DNA of 64,000 nucleotides from sequence record NC_022096.1; one strand, given 5' to 3'. Below are positions 1,896 to 63,107 of the stretch, in pieces; within the stretch, counting starts at the first letter, position 1, and each line of letters starts with the position of its first letter. The notes below the pieces were generated by a model. The model made no database searches. It worked only from the letters and a program-made list of their open reading frames with translations, and had not been told where the DNA came from. Made by a program: the position numbers and the translations under genes.

Positions 1896-2693
1896 ATGGC
1901 AGCCGTACGTAAACTATCCGACCTGAAAGAAGCTGGCTACAACCCGCGCGTCATCAGCAGCAAGCGCCTCAGCAACCTGCACAAGTCCATGACGACCTAC
2001 GGCGACCTGAGCGGCGTCGTGTTCAACGTCAAGACCAAGACCCTGATTTCCGGCCACCAGCGCCTCAAGCCGCTGCGTGATGCTGGCATCAAAGTCGAAA
2101 TCAAGACCAAGCCCATCACCGACAAGTTCGGCACTGTAGCCGAAGGCTACGTCGTCGCCAAGACCAGCGCCGGCGAGCTGCGCATCCCGTACCGCGAAGT
2201 ATCCTGGAGCGACAAGAAAGCCGAGTACGCTGCCAACATCGCTGCAAACGCTCACGGCGGTGACTTCGACCGCACCAAGCTCGGTACCCTGCTGGCTGCT
2301 CTGGAGAAGGGCAAGTCGTTCGACATCGACGTTCTGGGTCTCGATCCGTTGAGCGTGCGCAGCCTGATGCCGAAGATGCCGAACGTCGAAGGTAGCGGTG
2401 ACGATGACGGTGAATCGTTCCAAGAGTACGGCGAGGACAGCTTCGAGTTCGATCATCAGTGCCCGAAGTGCAAGTTCCAGTTCAACTCCAGCTCTGCAAG
2501 CAAGCCCAAGAAGGACAAGCCGCAACCCAAGGCGCCGAAGCTCGACGTGAAGAAGGCCAAAGCCGAAGTCAAAGCCAAGAAGATCAAGGCTGAGAAGAAG
2601 ACCGACAGCAAGGCCAAGTCCAGCGCCGCAAAAGAATCGCTGAAAAAAGCGAAGTCCAGTAAGCTCAAGGCCAAGATCAAGAAGGCCAAGTAA
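1896..2693 (+). CDS. ParB/Srx-like domain protein with CxxC and Lys-rich C-terminal tail
   Basis: YNPR...ISGHQRL ParB-N motif; CPKC; last ~60 aa Lys/Ala rich; AGGA RBS before ATG 1896. Confidence 0.75.
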   Translation: MAAVRKLSDLKEAGYNPRVISSKRLSNLHKSMTTYGDLSGVVFNVKTKTLISGHQRLKPLRDAGIKVEIKTKPITDKFGTVAEGYVVAKTSAGELRIPYREVSWSDKKAEYAANIAANAHGGDFDRTKLGTLLAALEKGKSFDIDVLGLDPLSVRSLMPKMPNVEGSGDDDGESFQEYGEDSFEFDHQCPKCKFQFNSSSASKPKKDKPQPKAPKLDVKKAKAEVKAKKIKAEKKTDSKAKSSAAKESLKKAKSSKLKAKIKKAK

Positions 2694-2704: not shown

Positions 2705-3712
2705 ATGGAAAAGAAAATCGTCAAGATACCTTCGATGAAGAAGATCAACGCTCTTCCGAAGGCATTCAAAGGCATCAGTTCGTTCTCCGGTTGTGGCGGG
2801 AGCTCCACTGGTGTGAAGATGGCTGGCGTCCAAGTGCTGCTCGCAACCGAGTTCATCAAGCCAGCCATCGAAACCTACGAGAAGAACCACAAAGGCACCA
2901 TCGTCATCGGTGAAGACATTCGCAAGGTCGACTGGGAGTCGTGGCGCAAGGAGCTCAAGCTCAAGCGCGGCCAGCTGGACTTCTCCGAAGGCAGTCCGCC
3001 GTGCAAGTCCTTCTCGACCTCTGGCACTGGCAGTGACGACTGGGGCAAGGAGAAACTCTACTCTGAGAACGTCTACCAGCGCACCGATGACCTCTTCTAC
3101 GAGGAAATGCGCAAGCTGGAAGCGTTCATGCCCAAGGTCTTCGTCTGCGAGAACGTCAAGGGCATGGTTGAGGGTGACGCCAAGGGTTACTTCATCGAAA
3201 TCCTGCGTGACCTTAAAGCAATCGGGTATAGCGTGAAGGCGCAGGTGTTGAACGCTGCCCGTCTCGACGTACCCCAAGCCCGCGAGCGCGTGATCTTCGT
3301 TGGTGTGCGTAACGACTTGGTGAAGAAAGGCTTTGAGCCTGTGTTCCCCAAAGCGAAGCCGTACGAGGTGAACGTCAACGACGTCCTACCTCACATTGCG
3401 TACCTCAAGTCGAAGTACCGAGGCGACATCAAGTACGTCCCAGCTTCGATCCCGAGTCCTACGATCGTGGCGAGCGATGGTACCAACAGTGAGACTGCCG
3501 GCTTCTCGTCTGGCGGCTTCATTGAGACTGTCGATGGCGAGCGCCGCAAGTACACCATCGACGAGTTGAAGAAGATTTTCACCTTCCCGGATGACTTCAT
3601 CTTCACTGGTACCTACAAGCAGCAGTTCGAGCGTCTCGGCCGCTCAGTTCCGCCACTCATGATGTATCGCGTAGTCGCGGAGCTTCGCCGCCAGATTCTG
3701 GAGAAGCTGTAA
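2705..3712 (+). CDS. DNA cytosine-C5 methyltransferase family protein, candidate carboxymethyltransferase
   Basis: Motifs I FSGCGG, IV GSPPCKSFS, VI ENVKG, VIII QARERV, X GRSVPP (Asn replaced by Arg313). Confidence 0.93.
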   Translation: MEKKIVKIPSMKKINALPKAFKGISSFSGCGGSSTGVKMAGVQVLLATEFIKPAIETYEKNHKGTIVIGEDIRKVDWESWRKELKLKRGQLDFSEGSPPCKSFSTSGTGSDDWGKEKLYSENVYQRTDDLFYEEMRKLEAFMPKVFVCENVKGMVEGDAKGYFIEILRDLKAIGYSVKAQVLNAARLDVPQARERVIFVGVRNDLVKKGFEPVFPKAKPYEVNVNDVLPHIAYLKSKYRGDIKYVPASIPSPTIVASDGTNSETAGFSSGGFIETVDGERRKYTIDELKKIFTFPDDFIFTGTYKQQFERLGRSVPPLMMYRVVAELRRQILEKL

Positions 3713-3793: not shown

Positions 3794-4570
3794 ATGAGCC
3801 AAGAACCTGTAGTAGACAACCACGTCCCAGGCGAACGCTGGGAGTTCAACGAGGACGTAGCCAAGCAGTTCGACCTGATGCTGGAGAAGTCGATCCCCGG
3901 CTACGGACAGATGCGTGATCTGGTGTATCGCATCGGCAAGCGTTTCGTTCAGTCGCCGTCGAACGTCATCGATCTGGGTGCTAGCCGTGGTGAAGCCGTG
4001 GCGCGCTTTATCGCTGAGTTCCCGCACTCTGACTTCTTCCTCTCGGAAGTTTCCGAGCCAATGCTGGCTGAAATGCACGAGCGCTTTGCTGATCTGCCGA
4101 ACGTGTTTCCTGTGAGCTACGATCTGCGCAAGACGTCCGAGCAGATTGCCACAGCGATTCGTAATCCGAAGTTCGGCATGGCCCACGCTGGGCTGAACCC
4201 TGTTGCGTCGCACACTACGCTGGTGCTGTCTATTCTCACCATGATCTTCGTGCCCATCAACTTCCGCCCGAGCATCTACAAGGGCGTGTACGACGGACTG
4301 GCCCGCGGCGGCGCGTTCATCGTTGTCGAGAAGGTGCTTGGCAACTCCGCCGCCATGCAAGAGCTGCTGGTTGACGTGTACCACGAGTACAAGCACGACA
4401 ACGGCTACAGCTGGGAAGCCATCGAGCGCAAACGCGCCGCCCTCGAAGGCGTGCAAGTACCTGTGAGCCATGAGACCAACATCGATATGTTGCGTGCCGC
4501 TGGCTTCCGCAACGTCGAATCGTTCTGGCGCAACATGAATTTCGTGGCCTATCTGGCTATCAAGGATTAA
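3794..4570 (+). CDS. cmoA: CmoA-like carboxy-S-adenosyl-L-methionine synthase
   Basis: WEFNEDVAKQFDLMLEKSIPGY, IDLGASRG, GGAFIVVEK, KRAALEG (Arg214) and AGFRNVESFWRNMNF all match recalled CmoA blocks; GGAG RBS. Confidence 0.85.
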   Translation: MSQEPVVDNHVPGERWEFNEDVAKQFDLMLEKSIPGYGQMRDLVYRIGKRFVQSPSNVIDLGASRGEAVARFIAEFPHSDFFLSEVSEPMLAEMHERFADLPNVFPVSYDLRKTSEQIATAIRNPKFGMAHAGLNPVASHTTLVLSILTMIFVPINFRPSIYKGVYDGLARGGAFIVVEKVLGNSAAMQELLVDVYHEYKHDNGYSWEAIERKRAALEGVQVPVSHETNIDMLRAAGFRNVESFWRNMNFVAYLAIKD

Positions 4571-4572
4571 CG

Positions 4573-5025
4573 ATGCGTGAACTCAAGCTACTCCGCAAGC
4601 GCGTAAAGCAGGCTTGGGCGGCAGAAGCTGACCTGAGTCCGAATGAGCGAGAACTGCACCAGTGGCAGTTCCTGTCGATGCAGAGCAACGTGCCCTATGT
4701 CGTCGGTAAGGGTGCCGCCAACACGTTCTTCTATCGTGTCGGTACTACTGGTGAAATGACCTACGTGATGCCAGACGAAATGTTTGCCATCATGGACAAG
4801 TGGGTCAACTCTAGCTTTGCTTTGTTCGCCATCACCAAGACGCGCGACATCAAAGACGCCCCGTGCTCCACGGACATCAACGTCCTGCTGCAAAAGACGA
4901 AGGACAAGTACGTCGGTTATTTCATTGTCGGTATCACACCCGACCAGCGTGTAGTTCGCCTGCATGTATTGAAAAGCGGACTCCGCAAAAACCAATGGGT
5001 GCCCTTCAAGCCGAAGAAACGGTAA
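4573..5025 (+). CDS. hypothetical protein in the modification cluster
   Basis: 150-aa ORF starting 2 nt after the cmoA-like stop. Confidence 0.7.
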   Translation: MRELKLLRKRVKQAWAAEADLSPNERELHQWQFLSMQSNVPYVVGKGAANTFFYRVGTTGEMTYVMPDEMFAIMDKWVNSSFALFAITKTRDIKDAPCSTDINVLLQKTKDKYVGYFIVGITPDQRVVRLHVLKSGLRKNQWVPFKPKKR

Positions 5026-5034
5026 GGAAAGACA

Positions 5035-5859
5035 ATGGACCAGAAGACTCGTTCCAAGAAATTGCGCCGAGCGCTCGTTGCGCAGGCGAAGTCGGTGGGC
5101 GTCAAGAATGTAGCCGTTCCCATGAGCAGCGGTGTGGACAGTCACTGTGCGCTGTTCGCCTGCCTCGAAGCTGGGTTGAGCCCGCACGTCTACTCGTTCC
5201 ATCTGGACGGCGTTGAAAGCCGTGACGTGCGTGTCGCCGAGAAGACAGCGGAAGCCTTCGATCTGCCGTTCACCAAAGTGACGCTACCCAATGGCAAGAA
5301 GCAACTCATCAAGGACGTCATCGAGCTTGCCCGTTTCGGCTGCCGTAGCAAGACGGACTTCGAGTGCTTCTGGCCAATGTGGCACTTGCTGCCGAAGATC
5401 AAGCAGAAGGCTTTCTTCACCGGCCATGGTGCCGACAGCCTGTACTGCCTTAGCCGCAAAGCTGTTCAACACTACGCCGGCCGCGAAGATGAATTTCGTA
5501 GGCTGGCTTTCTCGTCCAACAAAGCCTTCCAGAAGGGCTTGATCGAGAAGTGGTGTGAGACTAAGGGCAAAGGCAAAATCTACTGCCCGATCTTCTTCAA
5601 CCAGCAGACGCTTGCAATCTTCCAAGGCGCCAAGCCTGCTGATCTGAACAAGCCGATCCAGAAAGCCGTGAGCCGCATGGCGTTCGAGGAATACTTCGAG
5701 CATGTGCGCGTCTACGTTCACCAACCTTTCCAGTTGGGTGACACCGGCATCAAGATCGGCTTCGAGCAGCATCTGCTGGACAGCGAACTCAACACCAAGT
5801 CCTACAAAAGCGTTGTCGGCATTTATAATGAGCTGGTGCGCAACTACGGGAAGAAGTGA
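5035..5859 (+). CDS. stand-alone asparagine-synthetase-like (PP-loop) ATP-dependent amide ligase
   Basis: VAVPMSSGVDS PP-loop and FFTGHGADSLY matching the AsnB synthetase-domain TGxGADE motif; no N-terminal glutaminase domain; AGGA RBS. Confidence 0.75.
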   Translation: MDQKTRSKKLRRALVAQAKSVGVKNVAVPMSSGVDSHCALFACLEAGLSPHVYSFHLDGVESRDVRVAEKTAEAFDLPFTKVTLPNGKKQLIKDVIELARFGCRSKTDFECFWPMWHLLPKIKQKAFFTGHGADSLYCLSRKAVQHYAGREDEFRRLAFSSNKAFQKGLIEKWCETKGKGKIYCPIFFNQQTLAIFQGAKPADLNKPIQKAVSRMAFEEYFEHVRVYVHQPFQLGDTGIKIGFEQHLLDSELNTKSYKSVVGIYNELVRNYGKK

Positions 5860-6473
5860 CCATGTTCATCCAAAACTATATCCACTACAAGACCGATCCC
5901 GCCTCGTGGGTGCTGAACACGCTGTTCCCGCTGACTGCGGAAGAGTACGGCGACCAGCAAGCTTGGCTCGATGCTGGAGCTCCAGACGAACCTCCGATGA
6001 CTCGCGTCCTGAATGCTGAGCAAGATCGACTGTTCAAGCTGGTACACAAGCACGCCAGTGACTACTACGCGCAGAACAAGCCGTACCTGAACTCCGTCGC
6101 AATCATGATGGCAATGACCGCGCTCTACGGTGAGCAGCAAGTTCTCGGCCATTCGTATCGCGGTGCATTCCTGTTTGCCGGCAACTGCGAAGCGATGTTC
6201 AGTCGTCTGGTGATGCAAGGTCAAGGTGCAATGGATTTCATGCGCTACAACCTTGCACAAGAAGTAACTGGTGACCCGATGCTCGCGGTAATTCGCGCCG
6301 AGCAACTGTGCCACAAGTACGGCCTGCGTAATCACCGCATGCCAACCGGTGACGGTACCGACATCGTGTTCAGCCTTGAGCCGATCGCCAACCCGGTGTT
6401 CGATAACGTCAAATACATTCCATCCGTCGCTGGCTACTATACCATCGTCGGCAAAGGTGCAGCGAGGGATTAA
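5856..6473 (+). CDS. hypothetical protein
   Basis: 205-aa ORF, GTGA overlap with the upstream stop (alternative ATG 5862). Confidence 0.7.
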   Translation: MTMFIQNYIHYKTDPASWVLNTLFPLTAEEYGDQQAWLDAGAPDEPPMTRVLNAEQDRLFKLVHKHASDYYAQNKPYLNSVAIMMAMTALYGEQQVLGHSYRGAFLFAGNCEAMFSRLVMQGQGAMDFMRYNLAQEVTGDPMLAVIRAEQLCHKYGLRNHRMPTGDGTDIVFSLEPIANPVFDNVKYIPSVAGYYTIVGKGAARD

Positions 6474-13437: not shown

Positions 13438-14262
13438 TTAGCCGATTACCGCTCGCCGAACCTGTGCTTTCGTCATGTTGTACCAACCACTTGGCAGGCT
13501 TCGCCTGTTCCCGCCTTTGTCCATGAGAAGAAGGGTGAAGTTATACCCAGCGGCGATTGCAGCCTTTGCCTTCGCCGCGTTCTTCTTGAACGGACCGCCG
13601 TCTTGCTTCCCGCTCAATCCTAGAGTCCAGACGCTCTTGACCTCGATCACGTTGTTCTTGGTAACGTGGTAGAAGTCAGGAATGAACGTCCGGACCTTGC
13701 CCTCGAAACGATACTTGATCGTAGGCTTCCCGTCACGCACTTCGGAGACGATGTTCTCTGGCTTGGCACCACGGGCGATCATGTATTGCAGTGCCGCAGG
13801 TTCAAAGCCTTGGAGCTTGCGCGTCACGCCCGCTATGACTACCTCTTTCCTCTCGAAGTAACCGTAACGCTGTTTATCTTTCGCACAGACGAAACAGCCA
13901 TGCCCCTTGATGATGTGATTTGGGAGCATCTTTCGTTCGCTCTTACATTCAAGGCAGACGTGCATGATTTTCTTCAGGCGGCCCCTGTAGTCTTCCAAAG
14001 GCCTGAGTGTGGAGTCGCGCTCTTTAAGTTCGGCGATATAGGCATCCGTAGTTGGCAACTGATAACAACACAACAACTTGCCACGAGACGTTTTGGAACT
14101 CATAACGACCCCAGGATGGCGGTCGCGGATATCGCCACATTTGGTGCATTGGTGTTTGATTGAAGTCTTGATATTGACGTACTGTTCCAGTACGATGAGG
14201 TCAGGCCCGTACTTTTGCCTAACTAAGGCCAAGTACTCCTGATGGGTGATGCGCTTAGGCAT
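13438..14262 (-). CDS. Zn-finger plus PD-(D/E)XK endonuclease, candidate free-standing homing endonuclease
   Basis: N-terminal CTKC, CLEC, CFVC repeats; C-terminal FIPDFY...VIEVKS; the only inverted gene inside a + strand operon. Confidence 0.72.
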   Translation of the reverse strand: MPKRITHQEYLALVRQKYGPDLIVLEQYVNIKTSIKHQCTKCGDIRDRHPGVVMSSKTSRGKLLCCYQLPTTDAYIAELKERDSTLRPLEDYRGRLKKIMHVCLECKSERKMLPNHIIKGHGCFVCAKDKQRYGYFERKEVVIAGVTRKLQGFEPAALQYMIARGAKPENIVSEVRDGKPTIKYRFEGKVRTFIPDFYHVTKNNVIEVKSVWTLGLSGKQDGGPFKKNAAKAKAAIAAGYNFTLLLMDKGGNRRSLPSGWYNMTKAQVRRAVIG

Positions 14263-54629: not shown

Positions 54630-55904
54630 ATGAAACTTGCAGTCTACGCCATTGCGAAGAACGAAGCCAAACACGTCGAGCGCTGGTACGAGTCGGTAAA
54701 AGACGCCGACGAAATCATCGTGCTGGACACCGGCTCCACCGATGGAACCCAGAAGCTACTGAGCGATCTGGGCGTGCGTGTTGCCTCGATGGCTTTTGAA
54801 CCTTTCCGATTCGACACCGCCCGAAACGCGGCACTGAATCTGGTGAGCCTCGACGCCGACTACTGCATGTTCATCGACTTGGATGAGACCATGCCCAAGG
54901 GTAGCATCGCTGCCATTCGCAAGGCCATCAACAAGACTCAGAAGGACATGTACGCCCTGCGCCTGGTCTTCAAGTTTGACCACAAACGCCAGCCGATCGT
55001 GTCGTACCCGCGCGAAGCCGTACACCGCCGCAACGCTTTCTACTGGAAGTACCCTGTACACGAACTGCTCGCCTGCCATCAGGGCGAATACTCGTATGAG
55101 GAGCTCAACGTCCAGGTGTTCCACGAGCCGGATGAAACGAAAGAGCGCTCCTCGTATCTGAGCCTGCTGGAAACAGCCGTCGAAGAAAACCCGAACGATC
55201 CGCGTCAGGCGCAGTATCTGGGCCGTGAGTACATGTACCAAGGCCGCCCGTTCGATGCTCAGATGTGGCTCAAGCGCCACATTCAAATGGAACCACACGG
55301 TCCGTTCCGTTCAGAGTCTGCGTCGTACATTGCCCAGTGTTTCCTGATGCTCGAAGGGCAAGTCGAAGAGGCTATCGACGAAGCTGAGGCTTGGTACTTC
55401 CGAGCCATCGCCGAGTTCAATAGTGCCCGTGAACCGTTCTGTGAACTGGCGGACCTTTACTTCAAGTGCCATGAGTTCGAGAGTGCCATCGGCATGTTGA
55501 AGTCGGCCATGCGTATTCCAGCGAAGCCGAATGTCGCCATGATCAGCCGAGACGAGTTCTACTCGCACTGGCCGCATCACATGCTCGCTGCCTGCTACTT
55601 CAACATCGGCAATCGCACGGCAGCAAAATACCACATCCAAGAAGCGATGAAGTCTGCTGGCACTCTCAGCGGTCACCTCGCAAACGACATCGTGAAAATT
55701 CTGGGGCTCGAAAATGCTACTCAGTCTCTCCTTGGCGTCGAAGCCAGCTCGGGTGTCGAAGGACACGTTCCTGAAGATGGGCCCGAGCAAACAGAAGCAG
55801 TATCTGACCCACTACCCTCGGAGCAGCCATCGCTTTCTTCTCGCCAAGAAAGCCAAAGCTCCGAAACCGGAAGTGCAGCCGCGTCGTCGCCTGTCTCGGA
55901 ATGA
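54630..55904 (+). CDS. glycosyltransferase family 2 with TPR-like C-terminal repeats
   Basis: AIAKNE, VLDTGSTDGT, ARNAAL, FIDLDE (DxD), PVHE; helical YLGREY/AWY.RAI repeats. Confidence 0.85.
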   Translation: MKLAVYAIAKNEAKHVERWYESVKDADEIIVLDTGSTDGTQKLLSDLGVRVASMAFEPFRFDTARNAALNLVSLDADYCMFIDLDETMPKGSIAAIRKAINKTQKDMYALRLVFKFDHKRQPIVSYPREAVHRRNAFYWKYPVHELLACHQGEYSYEELNVQVFHEPDETKERSSYLSLLETAVEENPNDPRQAQYLGREYMYQGRPFDAQMWLKRHIQMEPHGPFRSESASYIAQCFLMLEGQVEEAIDEAEAWYFRAIAEFNSAREPFCELADLYFKCHEFESAIGMLKSAMRIPAKPNVAMISRDEFYSHWPHHMLAACYFNIGNRTAAKYHIQEAMKSAGTLSGHLANDIVKILGLENATQSLLGVEASSGVEGHVPEDGPEQTEAVSDPLPSEQPSLSSRQESQSSETGSAAASSPVSE

Positions 55905-61605: not shown

Positions 61606-61983
61606 CTAGGTGCCTACGTGGCTGACGATCTTGTTGTCGTGTATCCACGCGCCGATGAGAATGCGCCACGGGAGATTGCGACATTCGATCACAGGGTGCC
61701 CATTCAGCTCACCGATGATGTTGTTCTCCAGTGCCGACTGCCGATGCTCGTACTCGAACAAAGGGAACATCGGATGGCCAGACATCACGGACATCAGTTC
61801 TTCTGCCACAGATGGGCCTGCCAGATACACGAACTTACGATTCGGATAGTCTTCGCGCACCTGTTCGCTCGGCACACTCACCGCCTGCATGGTTTCCAGA
61901 TTGAAGTCACGGAAACCCCAGCGAATGACGTTGTAGCCGTTGACGCCGAACGCCAGCAGATTTTCGATATTGACGTGTTTCAT
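61606..61983 (-). CDS. hypothetical protein
   Basis: ATGA overlap with the thyA stop. Confidence 0.65.
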   Translation of the reverse strand: MKHVNIENLLAFGVNGYNVIRWGFRDFNLETMQAVSVPSEQVREDYPNRKFVYLAGPSVAEELMSVMSGHPMFPLFEYEHRQSALENNIIGELNGHPVIECRNLPWRILIGAWIHDNKIVSHVGT

Positions 61984-63107
61984 TTGGCCACCTTGGCTTT
62001 GATGAACGGATGGGATTTGTACCCGTCGATGTGGATGTCTTCTAGCTTGAACTCGGTAATGGACGAGTACAGCTCTGCGCGATCCAGACTCAACACAGGA
62101 TAGTTGTCTTCCATGATCGGCCGCTGTAGTTGCTGACGCACTTGGTTGACGTGGTTGGAGTAGATATGCGCGTCGCCGAACGTGTGGAACAGCTTGCCTG
62201 ATGCCAGGCCGAATGCCTGTGCCAGCATGTGCGTCATGATAGAGTAGAAGCCGAAGTTAAAAGGCACGCCGAGGAAGAAATCCCCGCTACGCTGATAGAG
62301 CTTGCAGTCCAGCGTCGGTTGCCCGTGAGCACCTTCGCGCACGCACCATTGCGAAAGCGTATGGCACGGCGGCAGCGCCATCTCATCCAGACGGCTCACG
62401 TTCCACGCACTCAGAATAATGCGGCGACTGTCGCGGTTCTTCGCCAGTGCGTGTTCGATTTGCGCCAGCTGGTCGATACGGCGCTGAATGACGATTTCGT
62501 CCTTGCGACCAACGACGGCGACATTGAAGCCGCGCTTTATCCAGCCGTCTGGATCAGCCGACCACTGATCTGCGGTGATGATGCGCGTGTCTTCTTGAGC
62601 CCGCCATTGTGCCCCGTACACCGGACCCAGCTCGCCGTCGAGCAACTGGTGAGCATGTACGCCCTTGCTTGTCAGCCAAGCATCTTGCGCGTCCAGATCA
62701 TCTGGGTTCTCCAGCGACTCACGGAACGCGCTGAACTCATCCAGAAAGCCCATGCGTTCGCACTCTCGGATACGCTCGCTCCACTCCAGCAGTCGGCCAA
62801 AGATTTCGGTGCCCGGAATGACCCACTCGTTCCAGATGTTGACGCCGTTGTCGAGCAAGAACTTGACGTTGCTCTGCCCGCTCAGCATCCACACCAGTTC
62901 CTTGATGTACTTGTCGTACAGTACCTTCTTGGTGCTCGGAATAGGAACCAGCAGACGACCTTGTTCGTCCGTAAGCTCAAACTCCATGTTGATTGCACCG
63001 AACACAGAAATGGTGCCGACCCCAGTACGATCTTTACGCTCCTGACCGTTCTTCAGGATATACAGCAGCGCCCGCAGGTACTGCTCCTCATTCTGCTTTT
63101 GAATCAT
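61980..63107 (-). CDS. thyA: thymidylate synthase with two insertions
   Basis: DRTGVGT, IWNEW, LGPVYGAQWR, SRRIILSAWN, ALPPCH, YQRSGDFFLGVPFN, GDAHIYSNH. Confidence 0.95.
   Translation of the reverse strand: MIQKQNEEQYLRALLYILKNGQERKDRTGVGTISVFGAINMEFELTDEQGRLLVPIPSTKKVLYDKYIKELVWMLSGQSNVKFLLDNGVNIWNEWVIPGTEIFGRLLEWSERIRECERMGFLDEFSAFRESLENPDDLDAQDAWLTSKGVHAHQLLDGELGPVYGAQWRAQEDTRIITADQWSADPDGWIKRGFNVAVVGRKDEIVIQRRIDQLAQIEHALAKNRDSRRIILSAWNVSRLDEMALPPCHTLSQWCVREGAHGQPTLDCKLYQRSGDFFLGVPFNFGFYSIMTHMLAQAFGLASGKLFHTFGDAHIYSNHVNQVRQQLQRPIMEDNYPVLSLDRAELYSSITEFKLEDIHIDGYKSHPFIKAKVAK

Follow-up and report, generated by a model that had tools for sequence, protein, structure and literature searches.

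The jumbo myovirus Pseudomonas phage PaBG (NC_022096.1 / KF147891.1) comes from Lake Baikal, infects P. aeruginosa PAO1 and has a genome of 258 kb. It encodes a protein, gp306 (O152_gp306, YP_008433503.1), that carries the label 'asparagine synthase' in GenBank, and the question raised by its locus is which carboxylate and which amine such an enzyme would join in a phage. The original prediction, made from the sequence of the locus, had read gp306 as a stand-alone AsnB-type ligase without a glutaminase domain that forms an amide on carboxymethylated DNA in an ATP-dependent manner and so defines the final base adduct. We followed it up in a window of 64,000 nucleotides, the whole stretch of DNA analysed here, in which each position equals the NC_022096.1 record position minus 124000; 3.8 kb of sequence surrounding gp306 are 100% identical to the PaBG record. 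The explanation that fits best is a CmoA-CmoX-CmoY pathway of DNA hypermodification in PaBG with gp306 as its CmoY component, and we consider this very likely. This kind of system has been known since December 2025, and gp306 of PaBG is most likely a further member of it.

Architecture and fold of gp306

The gene lies at 5035..5859 on the + strand and, as had been predicted, is an intact open reading frame, with an ATG start, an uninterrupted translation of 274 aa and an AAGGA ribosome-binding site 6 nt 5' of the start. The stop codon of gp307 precedes the start codon by only 9 nt, which leaves no room for an N-terminal glutaminase domain on gp306. Both motifs that had been read from the sequence were found, the PP-loop SSGVDS, an ATP pyrophosphatase signature that is conserved in homologs, at 5125..5142 (+, residues 31-36), and TGHGAD at 5419..5436 (+, residues 129-134), which in the alignment to 1ct9 corresponds to SGEGSD of AsnB. 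In the PP-loop, none of 67 homologs deviates at S31 or G33 and hardly any at D35 or S36, and the same pattern is seen in 214. A further near-invariant residue, K210 (5662..5664, +), is Lys in 211 of the 214 homologs and aligns with the Lys of EKHILR in AsnB (chain index 429). The homologs also share a family-specific invariant motif, K-T-x-F-E-C, that AsnB does not have. Pfam Asn_synthase matches residues 21-174 with an E of 4.9e-6 (26.9 bits against a gathering cutoff of 21), and phrog_26038 matches the protein with an E of 5.7e-138. An exhaustive HMMER profile search of 1.84 billion cluster representatives returned 518 relatives of gp306, and nearly all of those among the 150 matches listed are 255-320 aa long, so that the stand-alone architecture is the norm of the family.

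A search of the PDB with the single sequence of gp306 gave no match. With a family profile of 67 sequences, the PDB sequences of AsnB (1ct9, E 1.4e-9, residues 207-440), human ASNS, beta-lactam synthetase (1e-7) and carbapenam synthetase were matched, and the alignments to QueC and NadE were limited to the PP-loop region, that of QueC covering residues 23-81 only. An AlphaFold2 model of gp306 based on 60 homologs (mean pLDDT 94.6, pTM 0.91) was compared with the PDB by Foldseek, where AsnB was matched with an E of 4.3e-9 and a TM of 0.71. The best 21 matches were all AsnB, ASNS, beta-lactam synthetase or carbapenam synthetase, with E from 4e-9 to 2e-5 and query-normalised TM of 0.59-0.75, and the other PP-loop enzymes, TtuA, LarE and NadE, reached a TM of at most 0.38. 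A best structural match to QueC or TilS, which would have spoken against the original prediction, was not obtained: neither enzyme was among the best 50 Foldseek matches in the PDB, and AsnB-type enzymes top the list. The fold matches the synthetase half of AsnB, ASNS and beta-lactam synthetase over the whole query, and the profile alignment and NCBIfam searches revealed no N-terminal class II (Ntn, Cys1) glutaminase domain of AsnB, the start of gp306 aligning with AsnB residue 207 onward. gp306 is an AsnB-type synthetase domain without the glutaminase domain, and the original prediction was right in both the class and the missing domain.

The synthetase domains of AsnB (1ct9) and human ASNS are the best match to gp306 (TMq 0.71-0.74) and share with it the PP-loop, the G-x-G-x-D motif and the EKHILR Lys, but their acyl substrate is aspartate, whereas that of gp306 would be the side chain of a DNA base, and both enzymes also have the N-terminal Ntn glutaminase domain that gp306 lacks. 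In gp306, His131 stands in place of the Glu of SGEGSDE in AsnB, and CmoY proteins vary at this position. Beta-lactam synthetase (1mc1, 1jgt) and carbapenam synthetase (1q15), with TMq up to 0.75, belong to the AsnB family as well; they activate a carboxylate by adenylation, and their nucleophile is an amine other than ammonia. They differ from gp306 in retaining a catalytically dead N-terminal domain, in having small molecules as substrates and in forming the amide intramolecularly.

One element of the original prediction did not stand, namely that the basic N-terminus of gp306, KTRSKKLRR (residues 4-12), fits a DNA substrate. Up to the PP-loop, gp306 has a net charge of +7, but SpCmoY, the characterised homolog described below, has one of -5, and the family median is -1; the pI of the whole protein is 9.5 in gp306 versus 5.8 in SpCmoY. 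Because the acidic SpCmoY is proven to act on DNA, the basic N-terminus is no evidence for such a substrate. In the AlphaFold2 model, residues 3-20 are not a free tail but belong to the synthetase fold as its first helix, and in the family profile the basic stretch aligns with AsnB residues 207 onward. Judged from these comparisons, the basic N-terminus of gp306 is best regarded as a lineage trait.

The gp310-gp306 gene block and the published pathway

In Synechococcus phage S-B43, CmoA makes carboxy-SAM, CmoX makes 5-carboxymethylcytosine (5cxmC) in DNA and SpCmoY uses ATP to ligate glycine to 5cxmC in DNA; this activity was shown in E. coli as well as in vitro, and S-B43 virion DNA contains the resulting glycine adduct (Yang et al., Nat Commun, Dec 2025, PMC12783734). 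The name PaBG is absent from the main and supplementary text of that paper, and neither of two papers on PaBG, PMC7412058 among them, reports a DNA modification. By BLASTP, gp306 is 33% identical to SpCmoY (A0A514ABJ0) over 251 aligned residues, about 90% of its length, with an E of 2e-35, while gp309 is 35% identical to SpCmoX (E 3e-66) and gp308 29% identical to the biochemically verified SpCmoA (E 1e-31).

SpCmoY has the same AsnB-synthetase-only architecture as gp306 (271 versus 274 aa), both enzymes have CmoA and CmoX as partners, and 41 conserved positions are common to the groups around the two, including the PP-loop, K106, E110, C111, D134, K142, R155 and K210. The two systems differ in gene order, which is CmoX-CmoA-gp307-CmoY in PaBG and CmoA-CmoY-CmoX in S-B43, in the extra gp307 and ParB-like genes of the PaBG module, and in the position of the AsnB Glu, where SpCmoY has Ile and gp306 has H131. 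The uncharacterised CmoY-like ligases of the A0A7T0Q3R0 cluster carry a glutamine-hydrolysing domain (PMC12783734), whereas gp306 does not.

In PaBG the genes follow one another in the order gp310, gp309, gp308, gp307, gp306 and gp305, then a predicted peptidase gene, and between about 690 and 12000 every gene is encoded on the + strand. The co-oriented genes of the gp306 block are separated by gaps of 2-81 nt, no terminator-like or sigma-70-like sites were found inside the block, and the partners of gp306, gp308 and gp309, all lie within 2.4 kb on one strand. gp309 (2705..3712, +) is a homolog of the CmoX-type DNA cytosine-C5 carboxymethyltransferase and is matched by Pfam DNA_methylase with an E of 1e-51. 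CmoX, a C5-methyltransferase homolog, is defined by SPPC together with the carboxylate-binding Arg350 (PMC12783734). In gp309, SPPC is encoded by nt 2993-3004, and ERLGRSVPP aligns with ERVGRMVPP of SpCmoX, so that Arg313 of gp309, in GRSVPP (nt 3641-3643), corresponds to R350 of SpCmoX. With SPPC and Arg313, gp309 has both published CmoX signature features, whereas canonical C5-methyltransferases have Asn where gp309 has the signature Arg. gp308 (3794..4570, +) is a homolog of CmoA, the carboxy-SAM synthase, and TIGR00740 covers it over the full profile (E 7.6e-38) but with a score below the NCBIfam equivalog cutoff. Between the CmoA and CmoY genes, gp307 (4573..5025, +; phrog_23597) encodes 150 aa with no recognisable fold and is a candidate accessory component of the module.

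Directly 5' of the CmoX gene, gp310 (1896..2693, +) encodes a ParB-like protein (phrog_620, E 3.4e-38). Many CmoX contigs carry ParBc proteins (PMC12783734), and ParB-like proteins have been shown to serve as activators for some of the thymine dioxygenases of phages on dsDNA (PMC13229309, PNAS 2026); by analogy with these activators, it is conceivable that gp310 activates CmoX. A ParB-like gene is kept 5' of the CmoX gene in four of the metagenomic loci discussed below (L009, L011, L013 and L015).

Gene anatomy, fold, homology, synteny and fusion proteins were observed, and from them we infer every chemical step in PaBG. SAM and host prephenate would be converted to carboxy-SAM by gp308 (CmoA), and gp309 (CmoX) would transfer the carboxymethyl group to C5 of cytosines in the phage DNA to give 5-carboxymethylcytosine. 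gp306 would then bind ATP with its PP-loop and adenylate the side-chain carboxylate with release of PPi, and the attack of an amine on the acyl-adenylate would yield the amide and AMP. As gp306 has no glutaminase domain, the amine would be taken from solution. The presumed benefit is that the 258-kb genome is shielded from host nucleases. An ATP-dependent amide ligase acting on carboxymethylated DNA, as originally proposed, is supported by the homology to SpCmoY, the neighbouring CmoX and CmoA genes and the CmoX-CmoY fusions described below, and the proposal that the ligase sets the final base adduct agrees with the published role of SpCmoY (PMC12783734).

Read as a carboxymethylcytosine hypermodification module, gp310-gp306 predicts modified cytosines in the 258-kb genome. 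PaBG can be cultivated on P. aeruginosa PAO1, and its literature still files gp306 under amino-acid metabolism. The predicted modification would matter for the evasion of restriction and CRISPR, for artefacts in sequencing and for the phage or its enzymes as tools.

Relatives of gp306, the probable DNA substrate and the amine

Homologs of gp306 were found in 58 GenBank phage records, including 48 of Erwinia, 2 of Dickeya, 1 of Yersinia, 3 of Synechococcus, 1 of Staphylococcus and 1 of Salmonella phages as well as PaBG itself. CmoA homologs were found in 70 GenBank phage records, and these include all phages with a gp306 homolog except Salmonella phage Sen-NF. In the Erwinia, Dickeya and Yersinia phages, the homolog of gp309 lies 15-18 kb 3' of CmoY, and some 50 jumbo phages of these hosts with sequenced genomes carry the same module. 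We also fetched seven metagenomic loci (L009 to L015) around relatives that are 41-82% identical to gp306, and in all seven a DNA_methylase gene and a CmoA-type methyltransferase gene adjoin CmoY.

Among the matches listed, at least four natural fusions combine an N-terminal C5-methylase with a C-terminal CmoY (P0092, P0132, P0159 and P0181). These CmoX-CmoY fusions are independent of each other, and they contain SPPC in 4/4 and GRAVPP in 3/4. CmoY is also found with a C-terminal extension that resembles the UDG superfamily, for which there is a weak Pfam match in P0156 and P0217; the extension of P0190 is similar but gives no UDG match in Pfam, and the motifs GQAP and HPSG occur in all three. 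From these sequences, CmoY appears to be fused to a UDG-superfamily-like domain in at least two proteins and probably in the third. Both kinds of fusion provide an independent argument for a DNA base as the substrate.

The fusions and the conserved neighbours bear directly on two readings that would take gp306 out of DNA modification. According to its GenBank annotation, gp306 would be a metabolic, ammonia-dependent asparagine synthetase; its Pfam and NCBIfam matches are indeed asparagine synthase models, and the PaBG paper of 2020 (PMC7412058) places it in amino-acid metabolism. However, the NCBIfam AsnB equivalog TIGR01536 gives gp306 22.6 bits against a cutoff of 267.1, the Glu of SGEGSDE is replaced by His, and the invariant K-T-x-F-E-C of the family is foreign to AsnB. 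The gene is accompanied by CmoX and CmoA in L009-L015 and is sometimes fused to CmoX, and the characterised homolog SpCmoY acts on DNA, so that we regard this function as extremely improbable. It is also very improbable that gp306 is an RNA-directed PP-loop enzyme that works with the phage CmoA on carboxymethyl derivatives of the tRNA wobble uridine. CmoA is natively a tRNA-modification enzyme, five tRNA genes lie 4-6 kb upstream in the PaBG record, and gp306 has a weak similarity, confined to the PP-loop, to QueC and NadE. Yet the cluster contains no CmoB-like transferase and instead a DNA C5-methyltransferase homolog with the carboxy-SAM-binding Arg, the fusion proteins join CmoY to a DNA methylase domain, and in the structural comparison TtuA reaches a TMq of only 0.33-0.37, with QueC and TilS outside the best 50 matches.

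With DNA as the preferred substrate, the choice of amine remains to be weighed. In a similarity network that emulates the published one, calculated by all-against-all BLAST of 328 family members and scaled to the database size of PMC12783734, gp306 and SpCmoY fall in one component at the published E <= 1e-56 and are apart at E <= 1e-70. The published cluster that contains SpCmoY carries the residues that bind the glycine carboxylate, and other amines are expected for some CmoY clusters (PMC12783734). We also set 32 sequences with at least 44% identity to gp306 (the PaBG group) against 119 with at least 47% identity to SpCmoY (the SpCmoY group). At 22 positions the two groups have different residues, each conserved to at least 80% within its own group. 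These include, in the PaBG versus the SpCmoY group, R63/Y56, S105/K97, Q166/G161, Y227/K222, D236/deletion, S259/R253 and G262/D256. The basic residues K97, K222 and R253 are conserved only in the SpCmoY group, and R63, Q166 and D236 only in the PaBG group. In light of the 22 differently conserved positions, the amine used by the PaBG enzyme may differ from that of SpCmoY.

Position 131 is the most variable within the conserved motifs, yet it is fixed by clade: 28 of 29 proteins in the PaBG clade have His, those of other clades have Thr, Ile or Leu, and SpCmoY has Ile. The AsnB Glu that aligns with it is, we presume, located at the nucleophile side of the acyl-adenylate. As far as an alignment can tell, a position fixed in this way is typical of a specificity determinant. 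No amine-supplying gene was found near gp306 in Pfam and NCBIfam searches.

By analogy with SpCmoY, glycine or another small alpha-amino acid is the likeliest amine, with close to an even chance. It is possible, if rather unlikely, that the same enzyme acts on the same DNA substrate with a nucleophile that is not an alpha-amino acid, such as ammonia, which would give 5-carbamoylmethylcytosine, a polyamine or ethanolamine. This reading draws on the absence of K97, K222 and R253 from the PaBG group and its conserved D236, Q166 and R63, on the His fixed at position 131, on the separation from SpCmoY at E <= 1e-70 and on the published expectation of other amines in some clusters; against it stand the single component at 1e-56, whose published cluster has the glycine-carboxylate-binding residues (PMC12783734), and the lack of an amine-supplying gene nearby. 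If it were true, the adduct would differ from the published 5gcxmC. The sequence differences likewise allow the tentative proposal that PaBG-type ligases attach an amine other than glycine, perhaps with the participation of gp307, in which case the cytosine hypermodification of PaBG and of related jumbo phages of Erwinia, Dickeya and Yersinia would be a chemically undescribed one. The variable position of the AsnB Glu and the orphan gp307 are starting points for a study of ligase specificity.

gp307, gp305 and variant loci

gp307 is located between the CmoA and CmoY genes in PaBG as well as in its closest metagenomic relatives, L011 and L012 (53% identity), whereas its homolog directly follows the CmoA gene in L013 and L015 and, in those loci of Erwinia, Dickeya and Yersinia jumbo phages that were fetched, lies about 2 kb 3' of CmoY. 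Genome-wide, gp307 occurs in the same set of jumbo phages as its CmoA/CmoY module, and no homolog is present near the modules of S-B43, Staphylococcus phage F1 and L014. Searches with gp307 against Pfam, NCBIfam and PDB sequences, also at permissive thresholds, gave no match; its AlphaFold2 model (pLDDT 90) had no match in the PDB (best E 0.21) and matched only itself in BFVD. gp307 may be an accessory factor of the PaBG-type branch or merely a lineage-conserved neighbour.

Two more specific roles for gp307 were considered and rejected. As a separate glutaminase subunit it would be out of place, since it starts with MRELK (no Cys2) and has no sequence or structural match, and an HMM search for it as the free form of the C-terminal extension in the 385-413-aa CmoY proteins was empty, those extensions being UDG-superfamily-like. 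A JGI homolog of gp307 is labelled 'antitoxin YwqK', a label that none of our analyses supports.

Directly 3' of gp306, gp305 (5862..6473, +) encodes a hypothetical protein of 203 aa whose association with the module is weak. In the closest relative, L011, two genes occupy this position and conservation of gp305 (42%) is confined to its C-terminal 88 aa; the other loci have no gp305. As a candidate glutaminase subunit, gp305 gave no match to Pfam, NCBIfam or PDB sequences even at permissive thresholds. A 2OG oxygenase like that of the two phages described next was also rejected, as gp305 has no similarity to that oxygenase and is barely conserved. gp305 is probably unrelated to the module; a weak partial match to it was seen in Pseudomonas phage Lu11.

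A gene for a 2OG-Fe(II) oxygenase (PF13640, E ~1.7e-15) directly follows the CmoY homolog in Erwinia phage Y3 (L007:7086-7724) and in Salmonella phage Sen-NF (L005:6829-7476), and this arrangement suggests that the amide adduct could be tailored further in these phages. For Sen-NF, no CmoA match was found among phage records at E <= 1e-8, so that its CmoY-like gene may act on a different carboxylate. In Dickeya phage AD1, a DUF1611 P-loop protein (L008:4908-5963) is encoded between CmoA and a very divergent CmoY homolog that is 24% identical to gp306 and lacks Q166 and D236, which may be another variant of the pathway. In L014, CmoY is followed by a gene (L014:6794-8992) for a 732-aa protein with two tandem C5-methylase/CmoX-like domains, and a Mom-family gene (PF25680) lies 1.2 kb beyond it.

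Elsewhere in the PaBG window, a thymidylate synthase homolog of 375 aa (61980-63107, -) is matched end to end by Pfam (E 5e-87) and is about 110 aa longer than the profile, which implies an insertion, and a GT2 glycosyltransferase with TPR repeats is encoded at 54630-55904; no link of either gene to the cytosine module was found. Closer to the module, gp312 (689-1192, +), a DUF7487 / TnsA-like endonuclease, and gp297 (13438-14262, -), which is annotated as an HNH endonuclease, share a paralogous segment at 37% identity, and the two are probably homing-endonuclease copies that flank the region.
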